Source: Caecitellus pseudoparvulus | Lineage: Eukaryota > Protista > Bigyra: Bicosoecida | Assembly: GCA_965644315.1 (NCBI GenBank) | Contig: CBFFRQ010000018.1 | Location: 1,178,001-1,242,000 of the forward strand | Length of the DNA: 64,000 nt | Direction of reading: 5' to 3' | In this document: in pieces, positions 1-45,400 of the stretch | Numbering within the stretch: the first letter of the stretch is position 1 | Layout of the letters: every line of letters begins with the position of its first letter | The notes under the pieces: model-generated | Seen by the model: the letters and a program-made list of their open reading frames with translations, nothing else | Databases searched by the model: none | Told to the model about the DNA's origin: nothing | Translations under genes and position numbers: made by a program

Positions 1-3000
1 ACTGCTGCAGGTCTGAGTGGTAGGCAGCGTGCAGCCACACGCTTGCGACGACGGCGAAGTCGGCCATGAGCACTGACACGATGCTGGTGTTCTCCAAGCT
101 GGACACGCTGAACTTCAGGCCTGCGTCAGCCGCCACAACCCGCGCCGTGTGGGTGCCGTCAGCTGGCAGGTTCCCCGCCTCCACGCCGTACACCTGCTCG
201 AAGAAGCGCAGGAGGGCCGCCTTGACGCCGAAGTTCTGCACCGTCAGCAGCGCGCCCACGATGCCGTGCATGGGCACTGCTGCCTGGATGAGCTGCCCTG
301 CTTCCTCGCGCTGCCGCACAGCCCTGCCCCTGTCATACCGCAAGCGGTTAGGGGAGCACGTCACCAGCAGCCTCAGCATGTGCTGGTAAAAGGATGCCAG
401 GCTGCGCTCCTCGCCCTGCACCAGCGTGTCGTCGATGCCCCGGGCAGGGCGCGGCTCTGTTGATGCCGACGCTGCTGCTGCTGCTGCGGCGACTTGAGCT
501 GGGGCCAGGTGCACTTGGCTGTTGCGCCGGGAGCGGCTGATGCCGGGCGCCGAGCCAGTGGACACCACCCGCCGCAGCATGTCGAAGCGGGAAGAGGGGG
601 GCGCCTCCTCCGTCCCACATGCCGTCAGCAGGGGGTCCACCTGCAGCGCAAAGTGGCACAGCGTGTGTGGGGATGCCAGGTACGGCAACAGCCCCAGCGG
701 GTGGGCCCGCGTGGACGCCAAGTCCACCGCCGGCTCCTGCACGTCCCCAATGTGCGGCCCCTTGGCAGCCTTGGCGGTCCAGCTGCTCGCCAGCTGCGGC
801 TGTGGCGCATCCACTTCACACAGCTGCCGCACGAGCATGTCCTGGGCAGCCTCGTTGCCAGTGTTGTCCACCAGGGCGAACAGCACCTTGAGCAGGCGGA
901 TGCGACTGCGAGTGCTGGTGGCGCTGCGCACCCGCTGCACCATGTGGGACACTGTCGAGTGGTGCACGTGCTTGCTGGTGCCCGGGCTGCCCACAGCAAG
1001 GCAAATGACAAGGTTCAGGACGCCAAGTCCCCACCCCTGCTGCAGGAGGAAGTAGTTCACGTGCGGCCGCAACAGCGCCTGCACTCGGGGGCTGGCCTGG
1101 GCCAGCTCCCGCAGCCCGGTGTACACCAGGCGCAGCATCTCCACGACGGGGTGAGCTGGTGCCTGAATGGACAAGCGTCCCTTGCCAGGCGCCTCATCCT
1201 TGCTGGCTGCTTCACGCATGCGCTGCAAGAAGTTGCTGGGGAGGGGCTTGGACACTGCCTGGCGCAGCAGCTCTGCGACACGGGTGCCTCGAAGGCGGCT
1301 GCTCACGGTGCCTCCCCGTGCCGCCCGACCAGCTGCTGTGCTGGCGCCGAGGACGTGGGCTGCCTTGTGAGCCGCCAGCATCTGCCGTGCAGGGATGCGG
1401 GCCGTGGACAGGAGGACATCCACGAGGCCGCAGCCAGCAGCGAGGCTGGCTGTGTCTGCGGCACCCACTTCTTCCACTGCTAGCTGCAGGTGCTGTCGAA
1501 TGCTGCGCAGGACAGCTGATGCCATAGGCGCGACGGTGGACAGGCGGCTTCCGTTGATTTCAGCGGCCGAGTGCGATGTCCGCTCCAGCAGCATGAGGGA
1601 GCGCAGGCGAGTCGTGTGCCTGGACAGCCCGTGCAGCAAGCGCTCGTGGGCTGGCGTGGGCAGCGTCATGGACCTGCGCAAGGTGCCCACCAGCTCCAGG
1701 GGCACGTGCTGCAGGCGCTGCAGGAGCTGAGCAGCCAGGCGCAGCAGGGGGGGCCACGCCTCAACGGCAGTCTGGCGCAGGAGCACCTCCCGCAGCCCAA
1801 ACCGCTCCGCAACGGCGACAAACCAGCCCGGGCCGTGGGCTGTGCGCGCGCCCGAGGGCTTCTTGAGCAGGGCCACCGCCCGTGTGGCGTCCCGCATGGA
1901 GCGTTCGCCGCCATCTGCAGCCAAGGCCACGACATCCTGCACCGCCCACACGAGGGCAGTGTCCAGGATGCGGTGCATGAGGAGGAGGGCAGCGCGCTTG
2001 GTTTGCAGGAGCAGCCGGCTCGGGATGGAGAAGAGGCGCCCCCGCCCTGTTCCCTGTTTCTCCTCCTGGCTCGCGTCCAGCACTGTGATGCAGTGTGGCA
2101 GCAAGTCCACCAGCTGCTGCCTGCCCAGGGCTCCCCGCCGCACCAGCGCGTGGGCAACGCCCAACACCGCCATGGCGCACTCGTTCTTGTCAGCCAACGG
2201 CATGCAGCGTGCCAAGAAGGTGCACAGGAAGGCGTGCAGCGCGTCAATTTGCCCCCTTGCCAGGGCAGGCAGGGGGCAGTCGGGCAACGCATCTACTTTG
2301 TGCAGCACCTCCAGGCTTAAGCTGGCCGACCGGTGGCGGGTGCGGCGTGCCTCCCCGCCGCTGCTGCCCCCGCCCTCCAAGGCGCCTGCGAGGTCAGTGC
2401 TGCGGGATACCATGGTGATGACTTCTGCGACTAGGTCTAGTGAGTCTGCGCTGTCGCCGGGCGGCGGCGTGGGCTTGCCATGCGCCACGGCGGCGAGGTG
2501 GGCCAGCGGCAGGAGGGGGCGCAAGTTGCCCAATGATGTCTCATACCCAGCTTCCGCGGGGTGGAAGACGTCACGCTGCAGTGCTGCGTCTGAGGGCGCG
2601 GCATGCTCAAGCTGAGTGGACTCCAGCGCCGCCGCGTCGTCAGCCTCGGACACGTACGGCACCACGGTGGCGAAGGCACAGGCACCCGTGGAATCATGCA
2701 GCCCCACACGGTCCTTGATGATGTGCGGCTCCAGGAATGCCACACGCAGCAGGTGCGTGAGCTGGGCGCGCAGGGGCAGCAGGTCGCCCGCCAGCGCCTC
2801 ATCCTGCACCAGGCTGCTCAGGCGGTCAAACGTCATCTTCCCGTACTTCTCCATGAGGGAGCGCGTGATGACGCCGACGCCCCCAACGCTCAGGCGGCAC
2901 AGCAGACGCAGGAAGGCCACAACAGCAGGAGTAGTGATACCGCCCTCCTCCAGCTGCCCGTGTGGACCCTCTGGACTGCGCAGAAAGGCAGCTCGCAGCT

Positions 3001-6000
3001 GGTCGGGCGGCAGAGACCCGGACGCAGCTGCACCCGACGCAACGACAGCAGTGCTGTCCGTGCGACCCAGCTCAGGTGTCGCAGGAGAGGGAGGCTGCGC
3101 CGGCGCGGCCCCTTTCAGCGCTGCCCAGTAGGCCGAAGCAGGGTGCAGCATGATGCGCAAGAGGTGTGCCGAAGAGGCGCACAGGAGGCGGCGCACGACT
3201 AGCCACTGGTTGCGGGGCAGGGGCACGATGTCGGAGCCATCGCTGGCACACATGAACTCGTGGCCGCTTTCGACAGAATGGAAGGCGCCGCTCTCCGTGT
3301 CCACTTCTCGCGCCACAACTCGGCTGAGCAGCCCCAGGAAGTTGGGCAGCAGCTGGACATTCTCGGCCCGCAGGCAAGACGCAATGAGCACTTCGATTTG
3401 AGATGTCTTGATGTCCAACAGCGCGGGGCGGTACAGCAGCAGCAGGTCCTGCAGCGACCGCGCGGCCAGCTCAGTCAATTTCGAGTCCTGCTTGCGCCAC
3501 GGCGCATCCGGCACGGTCGGCGCCTGCAGCAGCTCAATGAGGCTTTCCATGTGCATGGCCCCCGCCGCGGCAGCCTCTCGGTTGCCCAACGTCAGGCTGT
3601 ACTGCAAGTGCAGGGCCAGCAGGGCACACTTGCGCTGCACGCTGGAGTGCCAGACTGCTTGCTGCCACTGCTCGACACCCTGCCGAGGTAGAGTGAGGAG
3701 CGTGCCCGCTTCCCCCATGGTCTGCGCAGGCGAAGCGCTGGGCGGCACGTCCTGCGTCAGTACAGCCACCAGCTTCACCAGCATGTCGTGCATGTGCAGC
3801 TGCTGCAGCACTTGCTGTGTGCTTTGCGCCACGACAGGCTGTACGTCTGAGCCCGAGCCAGGCGCCACCACTGCTGTCCACCACTGCTGCACCGCTGTGG
3901 ACCCTGCCTCCAGCACTTCCTGAGACGGAGGCGGCAGGGTCGCCGTGCCTTGTGATGCTGAGGCTGTGGTGAGGATGGCTTCGTGCAGCGCGTGGGCAGC
4001 CACATGCTGCTGGGAAGCGGCGCCACGCAGCAGGGCAGTGCACTCGACGGTGGTAAAGGCGTGGCCTTGCAGCAGGCGCAGAAGCCTGAGCAAGGTGGGC
4101 AGGAGCGTGTCCAGCAGCGCTGCCTCCACATGGACAGGGGGGAGCTCTCCAATGGCACGGGCTGCCGTTGCCACACAGGCCTGCAGTGTGGGACCTTGAA
4201 ATGAGAGGGATGCCTCTGGCGAGCCGGGAACGCTTGCGCAGGCGGCGGTGGGCGGCACGACAGCAGCCTCAAAGTGCCGCACGTTGGCGAACCGGCGCAG
4301 GGTTTCAGCACACTGCGCGCCACGTGCTACCAGGTCTGCATGGTATGCTTCAATGCCAGCGCCAAAGACGCCTATGGCGGCGTCAGGGCTGTGCATGAGG
4401 GCCAAGCGGCGTTCACTCTCTGCGGTGGAGGCGACGGTGCGGCACCGCTGCAAGCTGACAGAACCTGCGCCTCGCTCCAGAGCAGGCAGCAGGGCTGAAA
4501 CCTCTGCTTCCACTGCCAGGTGCGACACGGTGCTCAGCCACATGGTGCTGCCGTCTGGCCTGGAGTGCCGCAGGAAGACGGACTCGTGCAGGAGAATGGG
4601 GGTGCCTGCACTTGGCGTGGAGTACTGCGATCGCACAGCGTGGAAGGTAGCAGCGGCTTGCCGACTGCTCACCAGGCTGAGAGCTGTGATACTGCGAGAA
4701 CCGTGAGGAATGCCGCTCTCCACGTCCGCCCACTTGCGCAGCTCCCCTGGGCGGGCAGCTGGCTGCAACTTGAGGGGGCTGGGGGTTGCCGGTGGCGCCC
4801 CCAGCGCCGCTGTGAGCCCGCTGGGGCTGTTCTGCTCCAGGACACCAAGGAACTTGCGGGAGGCCGGGTGGTACAGGACGAAGGCGGTGTCCTCCTGCAC
4901 TGCTCCACACCCCCCCGCCACCAACTGCACCTGCCAGACGGAGGAGGAATGGCACCGTGCATGTAGGTAGTTGTTGTCGTGGGTCAGCTGCTCCACCGAG
5001 CGCCCACCCATAGCCGACGCGGCATCTGACGTGTCATCCGCCGGCCCTGGCGCGCGGAAGTACAGGCTCTCCTGCCCTAGAGTCCGCCCCGCCAGGGACA
5101 CTTCGGCGGTGGCACTGACGAAGACCGTGCCCGCAACGCTGGGCAAGGCGTCCGAGGCGAGGAGCAGGTACGCCCCGCCGTGCAGCAGCAAAGCCGTCTG
5201 CAAGCCCTCCTGCCCCGCCTCCGGGGCTGGCTCGGTGGAGACAGGCTCCACAGCGCCACTTGGCCCGTCCCCGTCGTCCACCTCCAGGGGCGCAGGGAGG
5301 AGGTTGTGCTTGGAGGCGGCAGCCCCCTCCGCCGCGGCAGCCCACGCGAGGGATGCAGGCGCCGCGAAGCGAGTGGCGTCATGCAGCGAGTTCGCCGCGA
5401 ACGAATGCCCCAGCCCCAGCATGTGCGAGATGCCCAGCCCGCTGGCCGGAGAGGTGCAGGCCAGGGCCTGTGCGTCCCGCGTGTACAGCGGCACCAGTCT
5501 CCACTCCGTGACGGTGAAGCTGCGTCCGTCCTCCGCCCCCGATGCCGTGCCAGCCGTGTGCCACGGCAGGTGTGCCCCGAGGGACGTGTTGAGAAATTGC
5601 ACCATGGCTTCGCTGCCCGTGGCGACGATATGGCGGCTGGCCACCAACACCGCCTCTGCCGCCTGCGCCTGGCCTCGCACGGCACTGCCCAGTCGCATCC
5701 AGGGAGAGGCGCTGGATGCCTGGGAGGCCTGGCTCGCGGCCACGACGCGCCGGAGGCCAGTTGGCAGCAGAGCAGGACTGGCACCGAAGGGCGCCAGCAC
5801 CTTCATGAGGGCGCTTTGCCGCAGGGGCGCAGTGCCCAGGTCCACCCGCACGTCGGCACCCCACCTGTGTGAGACGAGCTGCACCGTGTCGCCCCACTGC
5901 ACCAGCTGTCCCGGGGAGCGGTCAGGGGAAGCGAGGGAGAACCAGGTGTTGGACGAACCCTCCATGTACGGGTCCTGTGAGGAGTCCTCCAGCACCAGCT

Positions 6001-8268
6001 GGAAGAGGGAGGTCTGCTGGCCCACGGTGCAGGTGCTGCCTGCGCCGCTGGTGTACTGCCCCCGCAGGCGCACGGCGAGGAACTGACCAGTTCCCGCGTG
6101 ACGCAGCTGGATGAGGTTGCCATACTTGACAGGCCCGCCTGGCTGCCTGCAGTGCTTCCACCACTCCTGCCACTCCCCTGTCGCCACGTGCAGTAGCTGG
6201 GATGGCAGGACGCCCGCAGGTAGCATGCCCGCCTCCACCGCAGCATGGCTCAAAGTGAGGGGCTGCAAGCGACCTGGGGTGGTCCAGTACGCGAGGGAGC
6301 AGGGCAGCCCAGTGACGCAGCAGGTGGTGCTGGCGTCGGCGTCAGGGGCGGACTGCGAAAACCAATGCTTCACGTCGGCGTCGTACCGCACGTCCAGCGT
6401 GACCACACCTGCAAAGGCCCCATTCCTGAAAAAGGGCACGGAGTATGTGACCATCCAGATGTCGCCACCCCCCTCGTCAAAGTACGGCGCGCTCCAATGG
6501 TCTTGCTTGCGCTGGGCTGGCGTGGCAAACCACTCGTCAGCGGTGTAGTCGTAGGCGAGGGGCTCCATGGCGATGCTCTCAGTGCCGGCGGCTGGGGCAG
6601 CCACAGCAGAGTCACCGGGGTCACTGCCGGCTCCAGCAGGCTCCCTGCCTGCCACTGCCTCGGGTGTGCTGCGGGCTGCCCAGTCAAAGCCTGGGCCGGC
6701 TTCCTCCTCCTCGTCTCCCTCCTCGTCACTCGGCTCGTCGGCTTTGCACGCGTAGAAAGACGCACGGCTGGCACTGCCATAGGCGCTTTCAGCAAAAGCG
6801 ATGCAGCTGCCGAACACCCGGGCATTGCTGGCCAGGATGTCCATGAGCAGCTCACGAAGCGCGGCGTGTGAGGGGTTCGCTTGTGGTGCCAGCGCCAGCG
6901 AGCCCTCTTTCGAGGGCTCCACGCCGTGACCCACCTCTGTTGAGTGCGGCACAGCGGTGTCCAGTGCCCGGGTGAGTTTGGCTGCCGCTGCGCGAGGCCC
7001 TGCGGCGAGGGCCTCCAGGCTGTCCAGTGCCACCAAGGTGCGAGCGACGCCGGAGGAGAGTGCCTCTGGATCGCTCACCGCCTGGGCAGCGTGGCCTTGT
7101 GCTGTGACAAGGTCCTTCTCCGAGCCAGCAGCCAGCTTCACGGAGCCGACAGTGTCTGACTCCCCCAGCTGCACGTCCATGGTGGCAACGCCAGCAAAGA
7201 CGCCTGCCAGGCGGATGGGCACAGAGTACGTGATCATGGGCACGTTGCCACCCCCCTCATCGACGTACCCATCCGACCAAGTGGCACGACCCAGCTGGCG
7301 TGGCGTGAAGTACCAATCCCACTCTCGGTACAGGGGCAGGTAGCTCGGCGGGTGCAAGTAGTCGAAGGAGATGTCCCAAAAGGGGTTACTCTCGGAGCCC
7401 TCCTCATCCCTCTGCCCGAAGATGCAGAAGATGGGGGCGGGCTCCGAGGCGTCAGTGGGCCTGAACACGCCTGCTTCGAAGGCCACTGCCATGGACAGGA
7501 TGTTGTCGTCGTTGCGCATGGAGGAGGCGATGAGCGCCTTGAGCTGCTCCTCCCGCAAGGCGTCCACGCCCACGCCCTCCACGGCCGAGGCCAGCAGGCG
7601 CGGCCACTGCGCCATGCGCTGCAGGGCAAGGTCGATGCGGGGGCCGCTGGCGACCTGAGCATCCTCCCCGAAGCGAGAGGTGGTGGCGTCCACGTTGCCA
7701 CACTCCGGCGACGGGAACAGGCGTGCTGGCGGCGAGTGCTCCGTGCACGACGCAATGAAGAGCGTGTTGGCTGAAGGGCTGGCGTGGGTGGATGTGAGGC
7801 CGAACACTGCTCCGGGCTGCGAGTCTGCTCCCAGTGCTGCCTCGCACTTGTCCGAGACGAGGCCCAAGCCATCGCCCACCCGAATGGGCCGAGCACACGA
7901 GGCAGCCCGCTGGAACACCTCAGCCATGCTGGTGGGAACATGGGGCACCCCCACACGCAACGGCGCCTCAGAAGTCGTCGATGCTGCCTTTCCTTCTGCT
8001 GGAGACAGCGCCCGTGAGGTTGAAGGGGGCGCCGCGGCCGCAGCGGGCGAGCCAGGGCGAGCCCTAGAACCACCTGCGAACCCGGCGGAGCAAGCATGAG
8101 GGCGTCCGGCGAGCAGGGGGGAAGAAGGGGCATTATTCGCACCCCTGTTACGGGAGATTCGCGATGGTCCCGTCGTGTGGGCTGCTGCCAAGCGGCGGGA
8201 AAGTCAAAGGGTGGCGAAGTTGGCGTGCTGGGCTTCGGCAGTGCGGAGTTGGGCTCACCTCCTGACAT
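1..8268 (-). CDS. IP3-receptor/RyR-superfamily protein with two N-terminal Cache (PDC) domains; partial, C-terminal part continues beyond the left edge
   Basis: The minus frame with codons starting at positions =1 mod 3 appears open from 8203 to base 1: manually translated segments have no stop, and the ORF track lists nothing in this frame below 8939. Motifs: GGPVKYGNLIQLRHAGTGQFLAV (~6140-6070, cf. ITPR1 [23 protein letters not shown]); SSSVWQVQLVAGGCGAVQEDTAFVLYHPASRKFLGV (MIR, ~4950-4845); RIH1 ~3830-3180 ending PLPRNQWLVVRRLL; RIH2 EMLRLVYTGLRELAQASPRVQALLRPHVNYFL...AAQDMLVRQL (~1140-820); VKAALLRFFEQVY (~228-190). The start is tentative: ATG 8268 with a GT-AG intron 8258..8074 that restores this frame; alternative in-frame ATG at 7927. 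Confidence 0.88.
6390..7040 (-). other. Cache/PDC sensor domain 2 (within the IP3R-like CDS)
   Basis: LRELLMDILASNARVFGSCIAFAESAY...SFYACK, then an acidic low-complexity insert, then LAYDYTADEWFATPAQRKQDHWSAPYFDEGGGDIWMVTYSVPFFRNGAFAGVVTLDV. Confidence 0.92.
7170..7640 (-). other. Cache/PDC sensor domain 1 (within the IP3R-like CDS)
   Basis: RIDLALQRMAQWPRLLASAVE...EEQLKALIASSMRNDDNILSMAVAFEAGVF...FDYLHP...WDWYFTPRQLGRATWSDGYVDEGGGNVPMITYSVPIRLAGVFAGVATMDV. Matches the membrane-distal dCache_1 module pattern of bacterial receptors (WY..P...G...WSEPYFDEGGG...M.TYSVP....F.GV.T.D). Confidence 0.88.
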
Positions 8269-10229: not shown

Positions 10230-13200
10230 ATGGCAGGCGGCCGGAGGCATTGGGAGGCGGGACTGGCCCCAGCGCCTCCTCGCCTGGTGCGGCTGGCTTC
10301 AAGTGAGCTGCACTTTGCCGCCGCGAATGGCCGAGTGTCAGAAGTGGAGCGCTTGGTGGTGTCTGAAGGCTTCGATGTGAACAGTGTGGACCGGCAAGGT
10401 GAGGCTGCCCAGCGAGTGAAGCCAGTCCTGCGCCGTGGTCACGCGGTTTCCCCCACGACGCAGGCCGGACCATCTTGATGTTGTGCTTGGACCAGCAGAA
10501 AATGGTGGAGTTTGTTCTGCAGACTCTGCATGCTGACCCCGATGTTCGGGACCGCTCGGGGTCCACGGCGCTGCACTACGCAGGTGAGGTGCCGCGGCGT
10601 TTTCACCCAGCTGTGTGAGGCGGCAGCCCCCCTGCTCTCGGCTCGGCGCGCCAGCAAATGTCTCCGGACCAGCACCCCTCTGTGCGGCCTCTCGTATCTT
10701 TTTGCACAGCTAGGTCTGGCTTGACTCGAGCTGGCGAGATCCTGCTCAGCGGCGGCGCCACACCTTCGCTGGCAGCTCCAGCTGGCCCAAGCTCCGCCGC
10801 CGATGAGTACACACCGCTGCACTTTGCAGCTCAGGGGGGGCACGTCGGCTTCTTGCGCATGCTGATTGAGGCCGTGCCAGGACTGGAGGTTGACTGTGTC
10901 AGCCCCCATGGCTGGACAGCCCTGCACTGCGCGGCCTACGGCGGCCATGTGGCCGTGCTGAACTTGCTGGGCAAGCACGCCTCGTGCCCGCCCTTGCTGG
11001 CCCTGACCCTGCAGCCTCCTGGCAAGACGGCGCAGGAGCTGGCCGTGGCGCGGGGCAACGCGGACTGTGCGCAGTGGCTCGCCACCAAGGCGCGAGCGGC
11101 AGCGGCGGCGGCAGCAGAGGCGCGGTCCACCACGGACTCCCTGCTCAAGGCAGCCAAGCGCGGCGACCTGCCCACCTTGCAGCGCCTCATCCCGGCTCTG
11201 GGGGCGTCCGGGCAGCTGGGCGACTTGACCACCCGCACAGGCTGGAACCTCGTCATGCTGGCGGCCAAGTCGGGCAACGCGGAGGCAGTGGACTACCTCC
11301 TGCGCTCTGAAAAGCTGGGCGTGGACTTGACGGCCGCCAACAGCCGTGGGTGGAATGCGCTGCACATTGCAGCCAGCGGCGGCTCGCTGCCCGTCGTCAA
11401 GGCGCTGCTGGCGACGGGCCTGCCTGCCCAGGCCCCCACCAGCGCTGGGGCTACGTCTGCCGAGATCGCGCATGCTGCAGGGCACGAAGACCTGGCTGCG
11501 TACATCCACGCCGTGGCCATGAACGAACAGCGGGAGGAGCGCACAGCCAGTGCCTCCTTCGCCCCCTTGGCGCCCCAGGACGCGGCACAGCTGCAGGAGA
11601 GTGCGGCAGCAGATTCGTCCCCTGGCGGCGCAGCGGTTAGCTCGGGTGGGCGGGCCGCCACCAGCAGTGGCAGCGTGCGCAGCCGTCGCAGGACAGGCAA
11701 GAAGAAGGAGAAGCTGCTGTTCACGCTGGGAGGCACAGGGCCGGCTGGGCCTCTGGGCAAGGGCAAGGCTGAGGCCCACCCGTGGCTGGGTCGGCGGGGG
11801 ACAGTGGAGGTCGCCCCAGACAGGCGCAAGGGGCGCAAGGGGCGCAAGGGGCGCAAGGGGCGGTCTGGAGCAGGGGGGGCGGCAGGCAGCATGGTGGACA
11901 TGTCTGACGCCGGCCTGGATGCGGAGGGGGCACGGCAGAGCAGGCGGCGGCGCGCCGAGGCCAGGGCCATGTACGGCGCCCACGTCCTTCGCGAGAGCGC
12001 CGGGGGCCCGGACGCCGGCGCCGCCGCCCATGACGCAGGCGGTGCGAGGGTGTCCCCTGAAATGATGGACCTGCTGACGAAGCTGAGCTTGGGCTCCTTC
12101 GCCGGCGCCCTGGCGGCAGAGGGCTTTGATGACCTCCCAGCTCTCTCCTGTGTGCGGGAGGCTGACTTGGTGCCGCTGGGCATGCGCACGGGGCACAGGC
12201 GCCTACTGCTGCAGGCAGCGGGCGCCCTGTCGGTGTCCTTTGCGGGGCGAGGCGAGCGGCACTTGGCCACGACGTCCGCTGGCACGACGACGATCGGCAG
12301 CTCAGAGGGGCGGGGCGTGGACCTGGGCAGCAGCGGCACAGAGTTGCTGCCACCCCACCCTGACCGCAGCCAGTCCGTCAGCGGTGGCACGGTTGGCACG
12401 GGCGTGCGTGGGCCCTCGGACGGGGGTGGCTCCTCGCCCGGCCCCGCCCCTCGCTTGCTGCGGGCCATGACCGCCCCCCACCCAGGGGACAAGGCTGCCC
12501 AGGCGTTGACAGGCGACTTTGACCGGGTGGAGTGGGGCACAGGGAAGGCAGAGGCAGAGGAGGTCGGGACGCCTGTCAAGGGTGCCGCGGGGGACAAGGG
12601 TGAGGGCACCCCATCCACGCCAGCCGCCTCCACGGCAGTGCTGGCTGCAGAGGCAGCGGGGCGCCTGCCCCACCAGCTGGACCCCAAGGACTTCAACATG
12701 CAGGAGGTGGTGGGGGAGGGCAGCTTCGGCATCGTGCGGCGGGCCATGTGGCGGGGCATGGAGGTGGCGGTGAAGACCCTCAAGGTGGGCGTCGTGGTGG
12801 GGGACGGCGGCGTCATGGACTGCGACGCCTGCGAGGCGGGGGGGGATGGGCTGGAGGAGGAGGAGACCGGCACGCCCCTGACGCCCCAGAGCGCCAAGGA
12901 CAGCGTCCTGGCCGCGACGCTGTCTGAGCTGAGCCACGAGGCCCACCTCATGTCCCGCGTGTGCTCCCACGACCACATCGTGCAGTTCATCGGCGTGCTG
13001 TCCCGGCCCCGCCCCGCCGTCGTCACCAAGTTCATGGCGCTGGGGTCCCTGGAGGACATCCTGCTGCAAACCAGCCCCCGCAGCATGTGGAAGGAGCTGG
13101 GCCTGCCCCAGCTCGTGCGCTTGGCGGTGCAGGCGGCAGCCGGCGTGCTGCACCTGCACCACGAGGATGTCATCCACCGGGACATCGCCGCGCGGAACTG

Positions 13201-13705
13201 CCTGGTGGACCAGGGCTTGTGTGTGCGGGTGGCGGACTTCGGCTTCAGCCGCCTGCGGGACCGCAATGCGTCCAAGGGGTACACGCGGTCCACGACGGGG
13301 CCCATCAAGTGGATGGCGCCCGAGGCCATGCGCAAGCGCGCGTACAGCGTCAAGAGCGACGTCTTCTCCTTCGGCGTTCTGCTGTGGGAGATTTTCACCG
13401 GCACGCCGCCGTGGAAGGGAGAGGAAAACCTGGACGTCCTGTTCAGGGTGTGCGGCGGGGAGCGCCTGGATGTCGCCGCGCAGCCCGACCTGCCGCCCGA
13501 CCTCGTCAAGCTCATGCAGCAGTGCTGGGCGCAGGAGGCGGCGGACCGCCCTGACATGCAGGCGGTGCATGCGGCCCTGCTGCAGCTGCAGGACACCGTG
13601 GATGGGGGGCGTGTCCAGGCTGCGGCTTGCTCCTCGCCCAAGCCTGTTTTTGTAGATTCGTACGACCAGGTGCCGGCTGCGGCACCGCCAGCCCCGAAGC
13701 GCTGA
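10230..13705 (+). CDS. Ankyrin-repeat + SAM + tyrosine-kinase-like protein kinase
   Basis: Exons 10230-10398, 10464-10583 and 10710-13705 join in frame through GT-AG introns into ankyrin repeats (ELHFAAANG, GSTALHYA, YTPLHFAAQGG, GWTALHCAAYGG). SAM domain at ~12060-12220 (LLTKLSLGSFAGALAAEGFDD...GHRRLLL). Kinase motifs GEGSFG, VAVK, HRDIAARN, DFG, PIKWMAPE, SDVFSFG. Confidence 0.9.
11824..11862 (+). repeat. 9-bp tandem coding repeat encoding (RKG)x4
   Basis: cgcaagggg repeated four times inside the kinase CDS. Confidence 0.8.
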
Positions 13706-34250: not shown

Positions 34251-37200
34251 ATGCAAGCCGCGGCGCTGCGAGGAGCACGCTCGGCACCGGCAGCCCGGAG
34301 CCGGGCGGCGCTGGCCAGTGCCACAGCTCCCGGGGCGTCCACTGCCCCTGCCCAGCAGACTGGCAGTGTGCCGTCCCGGTCCTCCACCAACTGGACGGCC
34401 GTCGCCAACAAGCCGTCAGGGCAAGGGCACAACCACTGGGGGTATCGGAAAGCCACTGAGCACGGCGTGGCCTTCCCTCAGCCACCACGCACGTGGGTGC
34501 CGCCAGGCGCCACGGCCCAGGTGCTGGCGGCCGACGCAAGTCTCGCCACGCAGCATCGTTTTGGCGCCCGCGTGCTGGAGTTCAACAACGCCGACAGCCT
34601 GAACGAGCTGGACGAGGGCTTTGTCAAGGCACTGCAGGCCCGGCTGGAGAGCGTGCGTGGCCGCGGAGGCGCCCAGCGCGCTCGTGCCACGCCCTGCACT
34701 TCTTTTGCTCTGCCCTGGGCACTCTGCAGTATAGGGACAATGACGCAGTGGAGGTCATCGTGCTGAAGAGCGCCGCTGGCTCGGTGCGTGACGCCCTGCT
34801 GACATGCGGGATTACGCATGGCATGCCAAGCGCTGATCCCTGAACACACGCCTGCTCTGCCGCTTGCACCTCCGCAGGTGTTCTCGTCTGGCCTGGACTA
34901 CAAGCACATCCACAGCCTGTTCAAGTCCGGGGACGAGGGCAAGGAAAAGGTGAGGCGGTGTGCACTGGCAGCGCGGAGTCGGCGATGATGGTGCGGTATT
35001 TGCAGACACAGCACCCTGCCGCGCTCCCTGGCCCCCCCCCCGCAGGTGGCTGCCTTCATGCAGGCCATGTACGAGCTGGTGCACACCATCAACACCTTTG
35101 ACAAGCCCGTCATCGTCGCTGCGAATGGCGTGGCCATGGGCGCCGGCGCGTCCCTGGCCGTCGCCAGCAAGCATTCCTACGCTTCGGACAGCACTGCCCT
35201 GGCCTTCCCCGAGACAGGGCTGGGGCTGGTGCCCAGCGGGGGCGCCTCCTACGCCCTGAGCCGCATGCCCAACGGCGCCGGCATGTACCTGGCCCTGACG
35301 GGGGGGCATCTGTCCGGCCCCGCTGCGTACTGGGCCGGTGCGCTGACGCACCTCACCTCAGACTCGGTGTTGGCGGGGGACGTCGCCCACGACGTCGGGC
35401 ATGTCTTCGCGGAGCCCCTCAAGCACGCCCGCATGGAGGAGGACGCCCGGTACCTGCGCGTGCAGCGGGAGGTGCGTGAGGACTTCGACCGCCTCAAGGC
35501 CAGCCTCATCACCACCCGCCGCCCGGAGGACGCCAACGAGGACGACCTGGAGCGCTTCTACGAGCTGAACGTCTGGTACCGCCTGCACGCCAGCGGCAAC
35601 AAGCGCATGGCAGACGCCTTCCTCAAGGAGGGCTTCGAAGCCATCGGCCTGCCCGACAACGACGTCTCCCGTGGGCGCTTCCTGGACTTCGGCTCGCCGC
35701 CCTCGGTGCTCGGCCGCGACACGCCCGCCGCATCCCACCATCTGGAGGACGCAGCGCGCCGGGACCTGGCTGTGGCAGCCCTCGGCGCCAAGGCTTCCGC
35801 CACCCTCACTGCCGAGAGCGCGCCGTCCGCGGAGACGGTGGCGCAGCTGGCCGCCGTCAAGCGTGTCTTCGGCGCCGGCGCAGGGGACCCCCTGTACGCG
35901 TCTGCGGAGGGGACGCAGGAGGGCGCAGAGCGCAGTCGCCTGGACATCCTCGCCTCCATCGCCGACGCGCGCCTGCCGGGCGACTGGGAGGCGGCCCTGC
36001 CCTCCTCCCTGGACACGCTCGTGACGGACGAGCTGGCGGAGGTGGGGTCCAACCCTGGCGCTGTGGGGGCGGAGCCCGCCGCCCTGGCCCGCGCGGTGCG
36101 TGACGGCGTGCCGCTGGCGTGGCCCCTGGGCATGCTGCCCGCCCCCGTGCTGGATGCGCTGGCACGCAGCAGCGGCGCAGGGGACACCGCCGCTGCCCAC
36201 ACCGCCATCGCTCGAGCCGTCGCGCGCGCCACGGCAGCGACTCACGGCATCCCCGTGGACCCGCTGCTGCTGCCTGCGTACGAGGCGGGGCCAGCGGGGC
36301 TGGCGGACTGGCGTGGGCAGGAGACTGTGGAGGGCACCATCCCCGGCCTCACCCTGCCGCAGCAGCTGACGCAAGACATGGATGACATCCCGGACCGGGC
36401 CTGGGAGCTGGGCACGCCGGCGTCCCCGTCGTACCACCACCCCCTGGAGGTGGACGTGGCTGGCCTGCGGGGCGTGACGGCGGATGTGGGCGACGCCGCC
36501 ACCGCCCCTGCCTGGTGGCCGGCTGCAGCGGTGGCCCCCGTGGCCAAGCCCGCCTCAGCCCGCATGGGGCTGGACTTCGCGTCGGATGGGCCCATCGCCG
36601 ACCCCGACCGCTCCGCCGCCTGGCGTGTGTGGCTGCGCAAGCGCGTCGCCGCCAACAAGCGCAGCAAGGCGCCACACATCTCCTTCTCCGCCGCCTTCCA
36701 CGCCGAGGACGCAGCGGCAGCGGAGGTGACCGGCGAGGACGCGGCAGCCACCCTGGACGCCGCCACCGTCATGGCCACCCCGGCCGGGGGGCGCCAGTGG
36801 GCGGCCGACTTTGCCCCCCCCGGCGCTGAGGGCGAAGTGCAGGCCGCCGAGGCGCCAGCGCCCCGGCAAGCACTGCCCTCCATGGCAGCCCTGGTGGGCT
36901 CCGACGCCACGCCGGCGCGGGAGGCGGCGGACGTCCACGTCACGCCCCTCGCGGCCAATGCCCTGCTGCCCGACGAGGCAGGGGCCATGGCCGGGCAGCT
37001 GCGCCTGGAGGAGGCGGAGGACGGCTCCGTGCGCCTCGTGGCGCCATCCGAGACGGGCGGCGGCGGGAACGTGTACCGCCGCGTGGACGGCGCGTGGCAG
37101 CGGGTGGGGGACCTGGAGGGCACCCTGGACGCCATCCTGCTCAAGTGGCAGGCCCACGCGCGGCCCTTCGCAGACACCACCATCCTGGGCGGCAAGCGCG

Positions 37201-40200
37201 AGGCTGCCCTGCGCCAGTTCGGCAAGGCAGAGGTGGCGTACCTGGGGGCACAGCTGGCAGCGGGGGCGGCGCCAGACGCCATCCCTGTGCAGCATGCGCC
37301 CCTGGTGGCACCTGCCCTGTCCCCTGCCGAGGAGGGCGCCCTGGACGCCCTGCTGCAGTCTGTGAAGGAGGCGGGGGACCTGGCCACCCTCGTGGACTAC
37401 GGTGTGACGGGGGCGGCCCTGGATGTGGCCAAGGCCGCCAACCCCGACCTCGCCAGCGGCTCCGCAGACGCCCTGCAGGCGTGGGTGGCGGGCATCCGCT
37501 CGGCACCCACCAGCACGCTGGAGGCGAATGCCTGGGCAGCCTTGGCACACCGTGCCATGCATGTGGCAGCAGAGGGGTCGCCCCTGCCCAAGGCATCCCC
37601 TACCGACCCGGCAGGGGATGCCAAGGCTGCGGCCGCGCTGGCCTCCACACCCTCTGCGGGTGATGGGGGGGACGCAGCGGCTGCGCTGGCGGCTGCCACG
37701 CCGGCAGGCGCCCCCACCTCCATCAACACCGCGGCCTTGACGTCGCCATACTACGCCCACGACAGCACCAGCGGCGAGGAGCTGGGGGACATGGCGCCCT
37801 CTGCCAACGCCCTTGCCGCTGCCGTGCTGGACGAGGTGGTGCAGGAGGTGCGGGGGGGCGCTTCCCGCCTGCCGGCACCCACGGCGCCTGGCGCAGACGC
37901 CGACGTCACCGTGCCGTCCCTGGCGGCCAACGCCGCTGCGCTGTCGGCGTACCGCTCCGCCAACGCGGCGCTGGCGGGGCAGGAGCTGGCGCCAGACATG
38001 GCCGCCTCCATCGACCTGGCAGCGTACGGCGGGCGCGGGCCCAGCGAGGTGTCGGACCCCACGCCGGCCCTCTTTGACTCGGCGGCAGGCCAGCACACGG
38101 CCGTGGGGCAGTACACTCGCACAGTCATGGCTCGTGCCGCGGCCCTGTTCGAGGGCGGCGGCGACGCCATGACTGCCGCTGCGGCGACGCCCTTGCCGGG
38201 GGACCTCGCCGCGGGCCTGCGCAAGCTGGCTGCCGGGAAGATGGAGGCGCCCCGCCCCGCGCCATCCCTGGCCCAGGGCGGCACGCCCCTGGCGCCCACG
38301 CCCTGGCGTGCCGACGCCCCTGCAGCCGCCCTGGCCGAGGGCCTGCAACCCTTCGCAGCGCTGTGGCTGCTGCAGGCGCTGGACGCCGGCACGCTGGGGC
38401 TGAACCTGGCTGCGCTGGGCGCTGAGCCGCTGGCCAAGGCCGGCACGCCGCTGGGCGACGCGCTGGCGGCGCCGGCTGCCGTGACCCAGGCAGCCCTGGC
38501 CGCCGGCGACGCTCTGGCCACCGCCAACTCCCCCTCGGACTGGCCCCGCGACACGGCAGCCGCTGGCATGCGCCAAGTTGAGGGCTTGCCCCTGCCCGCA
38601 GGCAGCACACCCGCCAGCGTCTCAGCTGGCTTCGCCCAGGGCGCGGCGGGGGAGGGTGAGGAGGCGGTCCCCGCCGCTGTGACGGAGGACTACGCCTACG
38701 CGCGCCTGCCTGGCCGCCTGTCCTCCATCGCCACGCCGGAGGACGCCCGGGCCTACTACCTCGCCGCCGCCGAGGTGGCAGCTGCCAGCGGCGACGTGGA
38801 GACGGCTGCCGCCGCCGCCGCGACGGTGGGCGGCGGGGCAGGGCAGGGAGCCGGCCACCTGCCCGCCGGCCCCGACGCCGACGCTGCACGTGAGTTCGCA
38901 GCGGCTGCTGCCCAGCAGGCCGCCGCCGCCGCCGCCGTGCCGGAGTTCCTGGCTCGGGAGCTGCTGACGTCGTCAGGTGCCGCGGCGCCGTCGTCCCCCC
39001 TGCTGAGCCGGCTGGCCCAGGCGGCAGGTGTGGCGCACCCGACAGGCGAGCCCGTCCCCACCAGCGCCGAGGAGGTGGCCGCCCTGGCCCACGTCATGGC
39101 CAGCATGGCGGGGGACGCGGCGTCCCTGGCCGAGGCGGCGGGGCCGCTGGGCCTGGCCGCGCCCGGTGCCCGCCCCGGTGAGGTGCTCAACAGCCTGGCT
39201 GCCCTGGCACGGGACATCCAGGACACGCGCATCGTGGCTGTGGCGGCGGCGCGGGGTGGCGCCGTGCCACCTGCCCTGGCGGGGCGGCAGCCGCCCACCC
39301 CGCTGCAGTACGCCGAGGCGCTGGGCCTGACAGACCTCATCGCGACACGCTTCTCCCTGACGGATGCGGCGGGGAACCAGCGCCTGGTGCCGCTCATCTC
39401 AGAGTCCACGGCGTGGGCGCCCACTGTGGAGCAGGCCTTCGGCGCGGGGCCCACGGGGCTGGACGCAGGCAGCCACACCAACCACGGCCCCCACGACGTG
39501 CAGGCGGCCACGCCTGGCGTCGCGGACGAGGTCTTCACGGGGCACTTCGCGGGCATGGACGGCGCGGTGTGGGAGGATGTGCGGGACATCCACGCGGCGC
39601 CCGACGACATGGCCGCGGGCCTGGTGCAGGGCAGCACCTCGGGCACCCTCACCGACGCACACCAGATGCTGGACGAGGGGGAGGCGGCCGAGGCACTGGC
39701 CCGCGCCACCCTGCTGCCTGAGTCCGCCGACCCGGACATGGAGGAGGTGGTGGAGCACCTGGCCGCTGCGGCGGTGCCCAGTGCCAAGGGCGTCACGCCG
39801 GCGGCGGCAGCTGCCAACCTCGGCGCGGCCTGGGGCAACCCTGCCGTGGCCAAGGCCCGGTACGAGGCTGAGCTGGCCGCGGAAGCAGACCGAGTCAGTC
39901 GCCGGGCGGGTCTCAGCGCAGCTGCGAGCGCGCCCTCGCCTGCCGCTGCCAGCGAGGAGGAGGCGGGTGTGTCCCTGGGGGAGGTGGAGGCGCAGGTGGG
40001 CGCCGAGGCGCTGCCGTACCTCGCCGACAGCCCCGGCCGGGCCTCGGCGCAGGGGGCCGTGACCGCCCAGCACGCCTTCATGGGCAGCGTCAGCCGAGAC
40101 GCCGCCTTGACACGGGCGGCGCACCAGCGCATGCAGGGCGGCGGCGCCGTGGCAGGCATGGATGTGGCAGACCTGGACGATGGCGGCGTGCAGGGTGGTC

Positions 40201-42242
40201 CCACCAGCGGCGCACCCAGTGCCCTGGGCCCCGCTGCCGACGCCCTGGCAGCTGCCCAGGACGCGCCGGCCTCCTCCTGGGATGCCGCCTACGGCCTGTT
40301 TGGCGAGGCCAGCCAGGATGCCTCTGCTGAGGCGGTGCTGGCCGGCGCCGCCAAGCGCTACACGCTGTCCACTGGCAACGCCAACGTGCTGATGGATGTG
40401 CTGCTGGAGAGCGCCGGCATCCAGCGTGGCCAGGCCGGCACGTCTCTGGCAGGGCGCTTCGGCACAGACGCCGCAGACGCCGCCGACGCGGGCCTGGCAG
40501 GGAGCGTGGAGGACGAGGCGCTGGCGCAGGTGACCCACGACCCTGAGTACCTGCTCAAGGCGCTGGGCTTGCCCCGCACGCCGATGACGCTGGACACGGC
40601 TGGCGCGGCCACCCAGCACTTTGCAGCAGCGGACGCGGCCCGCTTCGCCGTCATGCACCCCCGCTCAGTGAGCACCATCGTGGCTCGCCTCGAGGCGGAC
40701 GGCTCCGCGTGGGCACAGGCCACGCTGCAGCGCCTGCGGGCGTGCAGCCCGACGGCAGTGGTGCTGACCCACCACCTGCTGGTGCAGGCGGCGCGGGTGG
40801 ACTTCAACACGGCGGCGGCCATGGAGGCCCGTGCCGCCGCGTACATGCTGGGGCACCCAGACTCAGAGGCGGGCCTGGCTGCCGCAGCGAGCGGGGCGGC
40901 GCCCACCTGGACGCCGGCCACCATTGAGGAGGTGGACGAGGCAGCCCTGGCGGCTGTGCTGCTGCCAGGCTCCAGCGCCGTGGAGCTCAAGCCCCGCCCG
41001 GCAGGGGATGCGCCACTGCAGGCGCTGCGGTCGGCGGCAGTGGACAAGTGGCTGGGGCAGTGGACGGAGCACCTGGAGTCAGGCTTCGGGGCGTCCCAGC
41101 TGGGGCACCTCTTCGCTGGCCGGTTCAAGTGGAACTACGAGCTGGGGGAGCACACGGACTACGCGCCCACGCCGCCCGTGCTGCCCAAGGAACTCGCCTT
41201 CGAGACGCCGGAGGAGGCGGCCCACGCTCGCCAGGACCTGCACGAGTACGACGTGAAGGGCGTGTCAGCCCGGGAGTTCGAGGAGGGCCCCGTGGACCGC
41301 TCACGGCGGTGGCGAGAGGACCGTGCCCCCGCTGCTGGCGCGTCTGCAGGTGCCGACAGCGCCGCCCCAGTGGCCACGCCCTTCAACATCCGCGTCAGCA
41401 CGTCGGGGCTGCCGGAGCAGGACTCCCTTGCCGTGCCGCAGCCCGCGCCCGCCGTGCCCGCCTTCAACGGCAAGACGCTGCCTGAGATCGTGCAGGCAGT
41501 GCTGGCTGCGGCCGACCCCGCGGCAGCAGCCCAGGCGGCGCTCAAGTTCGTTGCCGAGGCGTCACCTGCTGTGGCCCCCACTGGCGCCGTGCCCACTGCC
41601 GGCACGGGGGAGTTGGTGGTGCACGCCGCTTCAGACGCCCTGACGTACAAGGTGTCGGAGGCGGCGGGGCAGATGGCAGGCACGGCGGGGTGGGCCCCGC
41701 CCTACACTGCCCGCCTGGACGCGCTGTACGTGCCAGGGCAGGGCGGCGAGCCCCTCACCGATGCCGCCCGCGCCGCGGCTGCCGTGGCTGGCAAGCAGGA
41801 CGGCGGCGAGGAGGCGTCCCCTGACGCGCTGCTGCAGGAGGCGACGGCCCTGCTACAGGCCCTGGCAGCGGGGGAGGAGGGCGCCGGGGCCGGGGCTGAG
41901 GGCGTGCCCACGCCAGAGGACCTCGTGGCGGGCGCCCCCTCTGCGCCCGGCATCATGACCCGCGAGACGCTCGCCATGCACGCTGACCTGCACGCTGCTG
42001 CCGTGGCAGCGGGCGTGGCCCCGGAGGACTTGTCGCAGTATGACACGTGGATGGAGGGCAAGCAGCGACGCCTGGCGGGCATCCTGGCCAAGGACGCCAA
42101 GGGCCTGGCCCTGAGCCGGGCGGAAGCAGAGGAGCTGCTGAAGGCAGACACCTTCGGGCTGGTGGCTCTGGACATGCCTCGCAAGGCGGCCGCTGGCGCC
42201 AGCGTCGGCAAGGCTGCCCCCGCCGAGCAGAACGACAGGTAA
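34251..42242 (+). CDS. Giant HIBCH/mS47-like (ECH_2 crotonase) protein with mitochondrial-type presequence and a very large insertion
   Basis: Presequence MQAAALRGARSAPAARSRAALASA; three short introns before 35046. N-half: RVLEFNNADSLNEL, KPVIVAANGVAMGAG, AFPETGLGLVPSGGASYALSRM, GMYLALTG. C-terminal part at ~40665-40935: WAQATLQRLRACSPTAVVLT...PTWTPATIEEV. Confidence 0.8.
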
Positions 42243-42427: not shown

Positions 42428-45400
42428 ATGGCCACCCATGTCGTGGAGCGCCGGCAAAGCCCGGACCCAGCGCGGTCCCCCTCCCCGTCACGTGACGCCC
42501 ACCGAGCACTGTTGGCGGCGGCGGAGCGCGCGGCAGCCGAAGCGCCAGCGGGCTCCGCAAACGCCAACGGGCAACTAACAGTGACTGTGGACCAGCAGCG
42601 AGGGCATGGTGGTGATGCTGGTGCGCTGTATGATGAGGCAGGAGGGCCGGTGTACTTCAGCAAGGGGCTGCAGTATGTGCCAGGTGCGTGGGCAGTGTCG
42701 CCGCGACCCGCGAAACGACGCCGACCAGCACAGGCACCTGCCGCACGTGTCCGCGCCGCTCTGCCACCGCAGTTGAGACACGGCTCATGGGGCGCCCACA
42801 CATTCATGATTCCGCCAGTGGTGCTTCCTTGGACAGCCGCATGAGTGCAGATGTCCGCGCCGGCACCACCACTGCAGATTACCTGTACCCCCCCTCTGCC
42901 ACAATGTCCCGCGACGCCGCCACGGGCAAGTGGAAGTCGCAGACGGCAGGGCCGCACGCAAAAGCCTTTGACGTGCACGTCCTGCAGCCATGGGGGGGCA
43001 AGGGCTTCTTTCGGGGGCGGCGGTCGGGCGAAGGCGCCGACGCGGGCGTTGGGCGCGAAGCGGACGTCGTGCTGGGCGCCTGGTCCTGCTGCCGGTCCAT
43101 CCACCCCGATGCACGCGGGTGCACGTCGGCGCCCAGCCACAGCTGCACCACGCTGAAGTGTGCCCAGTGTGGCGTGCGGTACGGCGTCATGGAGAACCTG
43201 CGCGCCATGGCGGGGCAGACGCCCAACTGCAAGCACCACGCGGCTGAGCCGGCGAACGTGGACGCCTTCGGGGAGCCCGTGTGGCCCTGCTGCGGCGCGG
43301 TGGGCCTGTCCAACTCCAAGTACCATAGCCACTCCGGCGGCAAGGCGTCGGAGTACGTGGACCACGGCGCCGCACGCTTCGTCCCGTGGGGCTGCCGCAG
43401 CGGCTTCCACCGCCCCGCGGTGACACCCCTCGTGGACCCCGCCACGGCCGCTGCGGCGACGCCCACTGTCGCCCTGCAGGACGCCGTGTGGACGCTGCAG
43501 GTGCTGCAGCCTGGGCAGCTGACGCCGGGCGCGTTTGACTCGGGTCTGGACAAGCTGCCGGGGTTCGTGACACGGGCCCTGGCCAAACACGACCCAGCCA
43601 GGGACGGCAACCTGACTGCGGAGCACCCGTCTCTCATGCTGCTGAATCCCTGGGAACGCATGGTGCGGGTGGACGGCGTGCCCGCCAAGGTGGGTCGCAG
43701 GGAACTGCTGGATGCCCTGAGCACCGCCAGTGCCGGCAGCGGGAACGGTGGCATCCTGGCTGCGTGGCCCTGTGTCCATGACGACATGAGTCGGCACGTC
43801 GCGAGTGGGGCCGTGGATGCGGCGGTGCTGGAGGGCCGGGATGCTGCTTGCGATGCCGTGTACGCTGCCTTCCCGCAGGCTCGCCGTGCCTCCCACGCAG
43901 CACACGGCGGCAGTGGCTGGCATCCCGACGTCCCCGACACCCCCGTGCACCCCCTGTACGTGGACGCCACCTGGTTCGTGGAGTGCGCGACGCCTAGTGC
44001 CGCCCAAGCCCTGGTGGAGGCCCTGAAGGAGGGCCTGGCCGTCGGCCACGGCACGTGCACTGCAACCCTGGACCCGACGCAGACGCTAGTCCTGGCGCTG
44101 AGCAGCCAAGGGCAGGGCGTGTGGGTGGACACCTTGCTGCCCTCCAAGGCCGTGGCCGCCTCGGCAGGTGCCGCTGGGGCACTGATGGGGGACCTGGTGT
44201 TGAAGCTGGCGGCGCGCCTGGCGCCCGTGTCCCTGCAGCGCCCCCCCCTGTCCCCCACTGCCCCGCCCGCCGCCTACGCCTCCTCTGCGGATCGTCAGGC
44301 TGTGCTGGACCAGGCGGCAGAGCTCATGCGCGCCAGCGCGTCACTGGCAGCGGGAGGGGTCGTCACGGCAGGGCGCCCCCTGGCAGCCGGGCGGGGCGTG
44401 CCGGGCCACTGTGCCCAGTGCAGCGGCCGCGAGAGTGTCACGACGCGCGTGCAGACGTCCAAGGGCGTGCAGGTGGCGCTGAAGAGCGAGGGGTGCAGGT
44501 ACCACCCCGGGTTCTGGTGCCCTGCCCTGCGAGTGCGCCAGGTGCTCATGCACCGCCCTCAGGCCATCGTGGCGGGGGCGGGCGGGCGCAAGCCTGTCAT
44601 CCGGGCTCGCAGTAGCCGGCTGAAGGGGTACATCCACGCCCCTCCAGCTGGCCGTCGTGTGCGCAAGGGCCACGCAAGTCCGCCCACACACAGAGGCAGG
44701 GTGCCCGCCCAGCGCCCGCCTAGGGAACGGGAGGATGCAGTGCTCCCATCACGCACAGCGCCGCCCACACACCCCAGCCGGCCCAAAGCGAGTGCCAAGC
44801 CCATCCCCAGCCACGGCCACGCTCCACCCTCTCCACAGGCGCCGGCAGAGGCACCCAGGACACGGGCGGACCGTGCTCCGTCCCCCAGCCCAGTCACCCC
44901 TGGGAGCTCTCCCAGGAAACCAGAGCCAGGGGGGGGCGCCCAAGGCTCCAAACCAGACAAGCGCACCGCCTCGCAGCGGAGAGTGGGCCGCCCCGCCATC
45001 AAGTACACTCTGGGCGGGCCGCCACAGACGCCGCCGCCCCGGGCCACCACCCCGCCTCCACCTGCCTCCCAGCCAGTGTGGTACTCCTCAGTGGCCGACG
45101 CAGTGGGCGTGCCCGCCCTCCGCAGCGCCATGCCCAGTCTGCAGACGGAGGTGCTGTTCCAGGGGTACGTCATCCCGGAACACGACGACGCGCCCCTGCC
45201 GGTGCCGCCGCCCTTTGACGTGCCCATCCCAGTGTACCCACCCTCCCCCGTGCCGACGCCGTGGCGGTGGCTGCATGACACCATCACAGCAGACGCCGTG
45301 CGGCCGCCACCACCCCTCCTCCTGCTGCCGGCACACACCACTCGCAAGGCGCTGGCAGGCGCCCAGACCCGCGCCCCCGCCAGCGCCCTGACCACCTGCC

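Follow-up and report, generated by a model that had tools for sequence, protein, structure and literature searches.

The window analysed here is a stretch of 64,000 nucleotides from the marine protist Caecitellus pseudoparvulus (G000:C18:1178001-1242000), which begins within a minus-strand gene whose product we call Cache-IP3R. Judged from its sequence, this protein is a complete channel of the inositol 1,4,5-trisphosphate (IP3) receptor (IP3R) family, and a structure model indicates that two Cache sensor modules are inserted within its suppressor beta-trefoil rather than fused in front of it. On balance, we slightly favor the view that Cache-IP3R is a Ca2+-release channel of IP3R architecture tuned by a small cytosolic molecule, probably an amine.

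The Cache pair and the suppressor trefoil

A minus-strand frame of 2,734 codons runs from position 8203 to position 2 without a stop, which bears out the continuity between the Cache and IP3R parts described in the first-pass annotation of this DNA. In the adjoining DNA of the same contig (L002), the frame extends to 4,184 codons from stop to stop and ends at about C18:1173650. Counted from the ATG at 7927, the protein has 4,092 residues; translation possibly starts there, or at the ATG at 8268 via an intron of 74 to 77 nt.

Both Cache modules named in the first-pass annotation were recovered where it had placed them (Table 1), with PF22673 scores of 60 and 82 bits against a curated cut-off of 27. 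These are bacterial-type modules, but they are not full tandem sensors: each consists of a single distal PDC unit, and the complete dCache_1 layout is absent (PF02743 E 0.2, both units of the distal type, no transmembrane [TM] segment nearby).

The AlphaFold model of amino acids (aa) 1 to 720 (mean pLDDT, the model's confidence score, 63; folded parts mostly 65 to 90) brings the strands of aa 12 to 62 and aa 594 to 701 together in one trefoil, whose last strand probably lies near aa 805 to 815, behind an insertion. From aa 11-13 to 701-703, the model aligns with domain A of ryanodine receptor (RyR) 2 with a Z score of 16.0 (2mc2; also Z 15.6, rmsd 2.1, 137 residues) and with IP3R suppressor domains with Z scores of 14.6 (IP3R3, 3jrr) and 14.1, while its Cache part aligns with sensor domains with Z scores of up to 17.3. 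The Pfam match to the trefoil is weak (E 0.003): positions 97 to 174 of Ins145_P3_rec fall after the second Cache module in this protein, and positions 4 to 47 are weakly matched ahead of the first one in the orthologue P0030. Taken by themselves, the strands ahead of the Cache pair gave no significant HHalign match (E 0.07); it is only through the structure model that the insertion reading is settled. The gap holding the pair presumably corresponds to the position of the suppressor-domain helical arm. In this model, the N-terminal graft that had been proposed gives way to an insertion, and the suppressor domain that had been placed after the Cache pair is indeed there (HHalign P 97%, Z 14 to 16) but starts ahead of module 1.

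With the insert enclosed by the trefoil and aa 1 to 1668 free of hydrophobic helices, the modules are placed in the cytosol, away from any TM segment, as initially suggested. The Cys-rich linker leading from module 2 back to the trefoil contains two CxxC pairs in the relatives P0026, P0042, P0025 and Perkinsus and is degenerate here. It is possibly a Zn-binding module and bears some resemblance to a ZZ-type finger, with no significant match in Pfam or Atlas.

Channel domains

The pore that had been predicted downstream of the window was found in the adjoining DNA. Pfam identifies RIH_assoc (PF08454, E 4e-21) and Ion_trans (PF00520, E 1e-12), solved RyR and IP3R chains match the channel part outside the window at E 1e-42 to 1e-47, and the pore region aligns by HHalign over 426 columns (P 100%). 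The filter, GGGVGD at aa 3948, fits the GGG[IV]GD pattern, and the motifs CEGHN, TELTQGPC, CFICG, HKHN and YTGIESY are all present, CFICG and HKHN being those of a C-terminal C2H2 Zn finger. The filter, Ca2+-site and Zn-finger motifs agree with vertebrate ITPR1, and the Ca2+-site residues Glu, Glu and Thr are kept, as in IP3Rs; the Ca2+-site motifs are those in which the activating site of vertebrate ITPRs lies.

Profile comparison with ten canonical IP3R-like proteins revealed a collinear series of suppressor, MIR, ARM1, central linker (CLD), ARM2, ARM3 and TM regions, in which MIR and ARM1 are weak. Among the middle domains listed in the first-pass annotation, RIH2 is thus well supported, and MIR and RIH1 are weakly supported in this protein (Table 1). 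Pfam gave no match over aa 720 to 2640, MIR and RIH included, and phmmer found nothing in the PDB for aa 530 to 2640. The orthologue L019 directly matches Ins145_P3_rec, MIR (E 8e-5) and RYDR_ITPR in Pfam, the last two below cut-off. Armadillo matches obtained with an AlphaFold model of aa 860 to 1760 were discounted (pLDDT 36).

Such very diverged middle domains, silent in Pfam, would suit a protein that had ceased to be a Ca2+-selective store channel and become a diverged cation channel or receptor residing on another membrane (food vacuole, acidocalcisome-like organelle or plasma membrane) and responding to a non-amine ligand, and protist IP3R-like channels are found on varied organelles. 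Set against the filter, Ca2+-site and Zn-finger motifs shared with vertebrate ITPR1, this explanation appears very improbable.

Cache-IP3R resembles canonical IP3Rs (ITPR1 to ITPR3; protist IP3Rs, among them the EukProt PLAT protein P0006) in the order suppressor, weakly matched MIR and ARM1, CLD, ARM2, ARM3/RIH_assoc, TM pore and Zn finger and in its GGGVGD filter. It differs from them in the Cache-Cache-Cys-rich insert of about 530 residues at the suppressor arm position, an eroded IP3 site, a separate pore clade and a chain of about 4,090 aa that contains numerous low-complexity insertions. With the RyRs it shares a pore and RIH_assoc that score about equally against both receptor types, and a trefoil that fits RyR2 domain A; unlike them, it has no Pfam match to SPRY, RyR-repeat or EF-hand domains, and its length and collinearity are IP3R-like. 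It is the sole RIH_assoc match in the genome, in which a search of limited sensitivity with a vertebrate IP3R N terminus detected no further IP3R.

Table 1. Features of the Cache-IP3R gene and its neighbor, in window coordinates
Feature	Position	Strand	Basis
Cache-IP3R coding frame, aa 1-2642 of 4,092	2..7927	-	Sequence, Pfam, strain pN/pS; ARM3/RIH_assoc, TM/pore and Zn finger lie beyond the window
First strands of suppressor beta-trefoil, aa 12-62, ahead of the Cache pair	7742..7894	-	AlphaFold pLDDT 64-81, structural alignment
Cache module 1, aa 100-253, distal PDC type	7169..7630	-	PF22673 E 3.4e-16; Z 17.3 to 3li8
Cache module 2, aa 292-514, with long low-complexity loop	6386..7054	-	PF22673 E 5.6e-23; 3lic and CqsR alignments
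Cys-rich linker and helix, aa 533-593, from Cache module 2 back to trefoil	6149..6331	-	Alignment
Rest of suppressor beta-trefoil, core aa 594-701	5480..6148	-	HHalign P 97.2%, E 5e-11; P 94.9%
Diverged MIR / IP3-binding-core beta domain, about aa 905-1140	4508..5215	-	HHalign E 2e-4, 39 columns
ARM1/RIH1-like helical region, aa 1361-1586	3170..3847	-	Weak, collinear HHalign, E 0.019
CLD-like region, aa 1661-2002	1922..2947	-	HHalign E 3e-6 and 6e-4
ARM2/RIH2, aa 2054-2371	815..1768	-	HHalign P 95.7%, E 9e-9
Possible short first exon, alternative start	8259..8268	-	ATG 8268, GT donor 8258, in-frame AG acceptors giving introns of 74-275 nt
Head-to-head ankyrin-repeat (SAM) kinase gene	10230..13702	+	Pfam; start coordinate by sequence reading, provisional

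Integrity, family and origin of the insertion

The Cache-trefoil junction, where the possibility of an assembly chimera had been raised, is crossed gap-free by independent DNA contigs of four studies, and a single 24-kb metagenome contig covers 3100-9000 with 66 substitutions. Compared with a second strain, the frame shows 81 synonymous and 28 non-synonymous changes (pN/pS, the ratio of non-synonymous to synonymous polymorphism, 0.12), with 6 and 1, respectively, in the two Cache modules together and 3 and 0 in module 1; by this comparison, it is under purifying selection. The same architecture is found in nine other long loci, in addition to N-terminal fragments, trefoil strands flank the Cache pair on both sides, and introns interrupt the Cache exons of Perkinsus. 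An artefact, whether a chimera, bacterial contamination or a Cache region removed by splicing or lying in a separate gene, is thereby largely refuted and now seems scarcely credible.

Within the family, P0002 and P0003 carry the architecture with an N-terminal region 38 to 39% identical to that of Cache-IP3R, and it is also present in P0025, in P0026/L015 and in the intron-containing loci L019, L020, L022 (N-terminal part only) and L023. These spliced relatives, and that of Perkinsus, were compared exon by exon. In Perkinsus olseni, a parasite of shellfish, the hypothetical protein KAF4695122.1 reads trefoil-Cache-Cache-trefoil, its gene model has spliceosomal-type introns within both Cache modules, and same-strand models with RIH_assoc and Ion_trans come next, their pieces following the family profile in order. 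The Perkinsus pore is 47% identical to the one described here, versus 35 to 38% for canonical IP3Rs. The three hypothetical models at L017:10001-25373 (JABANP010000024.1) probably represent one split Cache-IP3R gene. A 3.4-kb gap with an opposite-strand open reading frame (ORF) separates two of the three, and a 502-aa opposite-strand ORF (L017 19288-20796) lies within the RIH_assoc region.

In the pore tree, the five Cache-bearing sequences included form one branch with a support of 100/100 (20 rows, P0025 being long-branched). The Cache insertion appears to be old: it was either present in an ancestor of stramenopiles and alveolates or passed between the two groups. Recent horizontal transfer or contamination was ruled out by the introns, the pore clade and synteny. 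The Cache modules have their closest relatives among bacterial receptors linked to phosphatases and kinases, in keeping with the horizontal acquisition considered in the first-pass annotation, which would however not be a recent one-off but belong to an old, intron-bearing family that includes the alveolate Perkinsus. The two modules may have arisen by duplication or by two acquisitions: a quick Cache tree set them apart, but when the two were constrained to group together the log-likelihood improved by 27 units (p-AU, the approximately unbiased test value, 0.80).

The modules share their fold (Z 14 to 17) and pocket residues with the distal modules of bacterial and archaeal dCache_1 receptors (PF22673: 3LIC, 3LIB, CqsR, PctD, PacA, McpX; unsolved receptors linked to SpoIIE/RsbU or to Ser/Thr kinases). 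Unlike these, they are cytosolic, without flanking TM or HAMP segments, without a proximal PDC unit and without the R/D clamp, and two distal units stand in tandem. A parallel to this layout is offered by P0045 and P0046, which seem to be bacterial and consist of a signal peptide and tandem distal-type Cache modules only; in the Cache tree, P0045 does not group closely with the modules described here. On the same contig, L007:934-2580 (G000:C18, about 350.1-351.8 kb) holds a 549-codon frame with dCache_1/PF22673 and HAMP, the layout of a bacterial-style receptor.

Cache domains are mostly extracellular. Those of alpha2delta/CACHD1 and GPR158/179 likewise serve eukaryotic channel subunits or receptors, but they lie outside the cell. 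The alpha2delta/CACHD1 proteins have a VWA insertion and an amino-acid motif (PMC8915833), and no VWA match was found in Cache-IP3R. Against the module profile, CACHD1 scores much more weakly than bacterial 3LIC (E 3e-3 versus 2e-28), which points to a separate Cache acquisition. The genome also contains a Cache protein of that other kind, an alpha2delta-type VWA_N/VWA/Cache frame of 1,557 codons (L006, G000:C79:152658-155795, minus strand). Prokaryotic pentameric ligand-gated channels with Cache (PMC549065) similarly combine a Cache sensor and an ion channel in one chain, but the channel is unrelated, the sensor extracellular and the fusion terminal. No description of the Cache-IP3R architecture was found in the full-text papers searched, outside which most subscription journals lie, nor in the supplements of PMC4822843, and the novelty claimed for it at first sight holds within the literature covered.

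The ankyrin-repeat kinase gene that faces Cache-IP3R is kept in this head-to-head pairing in L009:399-2918 and L010:1264-3819, in which the kinases are 44 to 49% and the channels about 38% identical; the pairing was not seen at the more distant family loci examined. Elsewhere in the window, two more very long stop-free frames, 34989-42239 (+, 2,417 codons) and 42637-47055 (+, 1,473 codons), occupy its most G+C-rich part. A short 18S rRNA gene of 1,697 nt, with signatures that look stramenopile and possibly bicosoecid, is present in tandem copies on another contig (L012:1501-3197, G000:C81).

Ligand pockets, the IP3 site and gating

The pocket of module 1 is formed by F170, W205, Y206, Y221, D223, M231, T233 and D251, and that of module 2 by Y392, W466, F467, Y482, D484, M492, T494 and D512. 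At all eight positions, the residue type is shared by the two modules of this protein, P0002, P0025 (N terminus 29% identical) and the nearest bacterial receptors, and conservation in the alignment is among the highest at the Asp, Met and Tyr that face the ligand. In a mapping onto PctD that reproduces the published numbering, with the W155 position placed by transitive alignment, both modules have an aromatic residue (F/Y) at W155, Trp at F188, Y/F at Y189, Met at M215, Thr at S217, Asp at D235, Tyr at A204 and Asp at Y206. In PctD, mutants of W155, F188, M215, S217 and D235 lose affinity 5- to 373-fold; an aromatic residue at the A204 position reportedly disfavors quaternary amines, and small amines are the ligands of several sensors that have one (PMC10589655). 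Both pocket aspartates align with D171 and D198 of CqsR, which are needed for ethanolamine sensing (PMC7046293).

Most of the best structural matches are amine or polyamine sensors, and a small amine is our best guess for the Cache ligand, short of an assignment. The amino-acid-sensor (dCache_1AA) motif YxxxxRxW...Y...D is absent, its Arg being replaced by W203 (module 1) and D464 (module 2), and so is the purine-sensor (dCache_1PU) motif (McpH F167, D169 and terminal Gly), with Thr at the F167 and Asp at the G185 equivalent according to published position equivalences.

As for the mechanism, we propose a homotetrameric intracellular Ca2+-release channel whose suppressor domain would hold the two inserted Cache pockets. 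A small cytosolic molecule, most likely a primary amine or amino-alcohol of the ethanolamine/methylamine type, would sit in the pocket with the aromatic residues on one side and the aspartate pair on the other. Closure of the pocket could then shift the C-terminal helix of module 2 and the Cys-rich linker, which lead directly into the trefoil, and the resulting shift of the suppressor domain would make a pore co-activated by Ca2+ more or less likely to open. In this scheme, the Cache ligand would act instead of IP3 or in addition to it. In mammalian IP3Rs, the suppressor domain couples ligand binding to gating (PMC9694693). Both ligand binding and pore control by the Cache modules are inferred.

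Several observations weigh against a ligand-tuned channel. The pocket has decayed in Cache module 1 of Perkinsus and partly in P0026. The strict amine-sensor (dCache_1AM) motif includes an R103-D133 clamp above the pocket, which is lacking here: R156 takes the D133 position in module 1, and module 2 has no counterpart of it. In addition, no ligand could be established for the nearest bacterial subfamily (3LIC-like, SpoIIE-/kinase-linked). In bacteria, the signal is passed on through a proximal PDC unit and a membrane anchor, both of which are missing from each module here, and the linkers of aa 68-98 and 258-295 have low confidence in the AlphaFold model. Finally, the genome has a PI-PLC-X (phosphoinositide phospholipase C) match, its only one, at L021 (G000:C80:246206-246640), so that IP3 could be made, and trypanosome channels respond to IP3 in spite of the eroded IP3 sites that are common in protist IP3Rs (PMC9694693).

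The decay tolerated in Perkinsus and P0026 might be expected if the modules were structural or protein-interaction units without a small ligand. They could dimerise neighboring subunits or whole channels, or serve as a docking site for another protein, for instance the ankyrin kinase, whose head-to-head position is kept in relatives. Cache domains do dimerise via long helices. A scaffold would, however, have no need of the conserved ligand-facing Asp, Met and Tyr, and the kinase synteny stops short of the more distant loci; we consider such a role unlikely.

The IP3 site itself looks mostly lost. At the ARM1-side contacts R504, K508, R511, Y567 and K569, a weak alignment (E 0.019) places Q, Q, Q, N and E, so that five of the six positions are changed and the R568 equivalent alone is kept; the beta-side residues (R265, T267, R269) were not alignable by profile, and family members do not share a conserved motif on that side. 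The presence of a PI-PLC and the trypanosome precedent, along with the retained R568 equivalent, the intact Ca2+-site residues and the lack of a second IP3R in our search, would agree with a channel still gated by IP3 or by Ca2+ alone, with the Cache ligand exerting no more than a minor allosteric influence, much as ATP or caffeine does on IP3R and RyR. Weighing the apparent loss of the ARM1-side contacts, the lack of a family-wide beta-side motif and the Cache pockets kept over deep divergence, we grant this alternative a minor, though real, share of the probability and retain tuning by a cytosolic small molecule as the preferred reading.

Many protist IP3R-like channels have eroded IP3 sites, which raises the question of what opens them (PMC9694693). 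Cache-IP3R makes it directly testable, because a recognisable module of a ligand-binding type is part of the gating domain, and Cache domains can be expressed and screened in isolation by routine means. IP3R channels, Cache sensors and prokaryotic Cache-channel fusions were known beforehand; the Cache pair inserted in an IP3R suppressor domain appears to be new within the literature searched. The comparison has also identified a probable IP3R-type channel gene in Perkinsus olseni, which the current annotation splits into three hypothetical proteins.

We tentatively extend the proposal, with more doubt than conviction, to an old protist family, comprising at least one probable stramenopile and one alveolate, whose channels would be opened directly by a cytosolic metabolite, such as a prey- or host-derived amine, through bacterial-derived Cache pockets, IP3 no longer being the trigger. 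Independently of this extension, Cache-IP3R would show a sensor that is mostly extracellular at work in the cytosol and without a VWA domain. It would further represent what seems to be a distinct arrival of Cache domains in eukaryotes, and a natural change of ligand of a giant channel through domain insertion at the suppressor arm.

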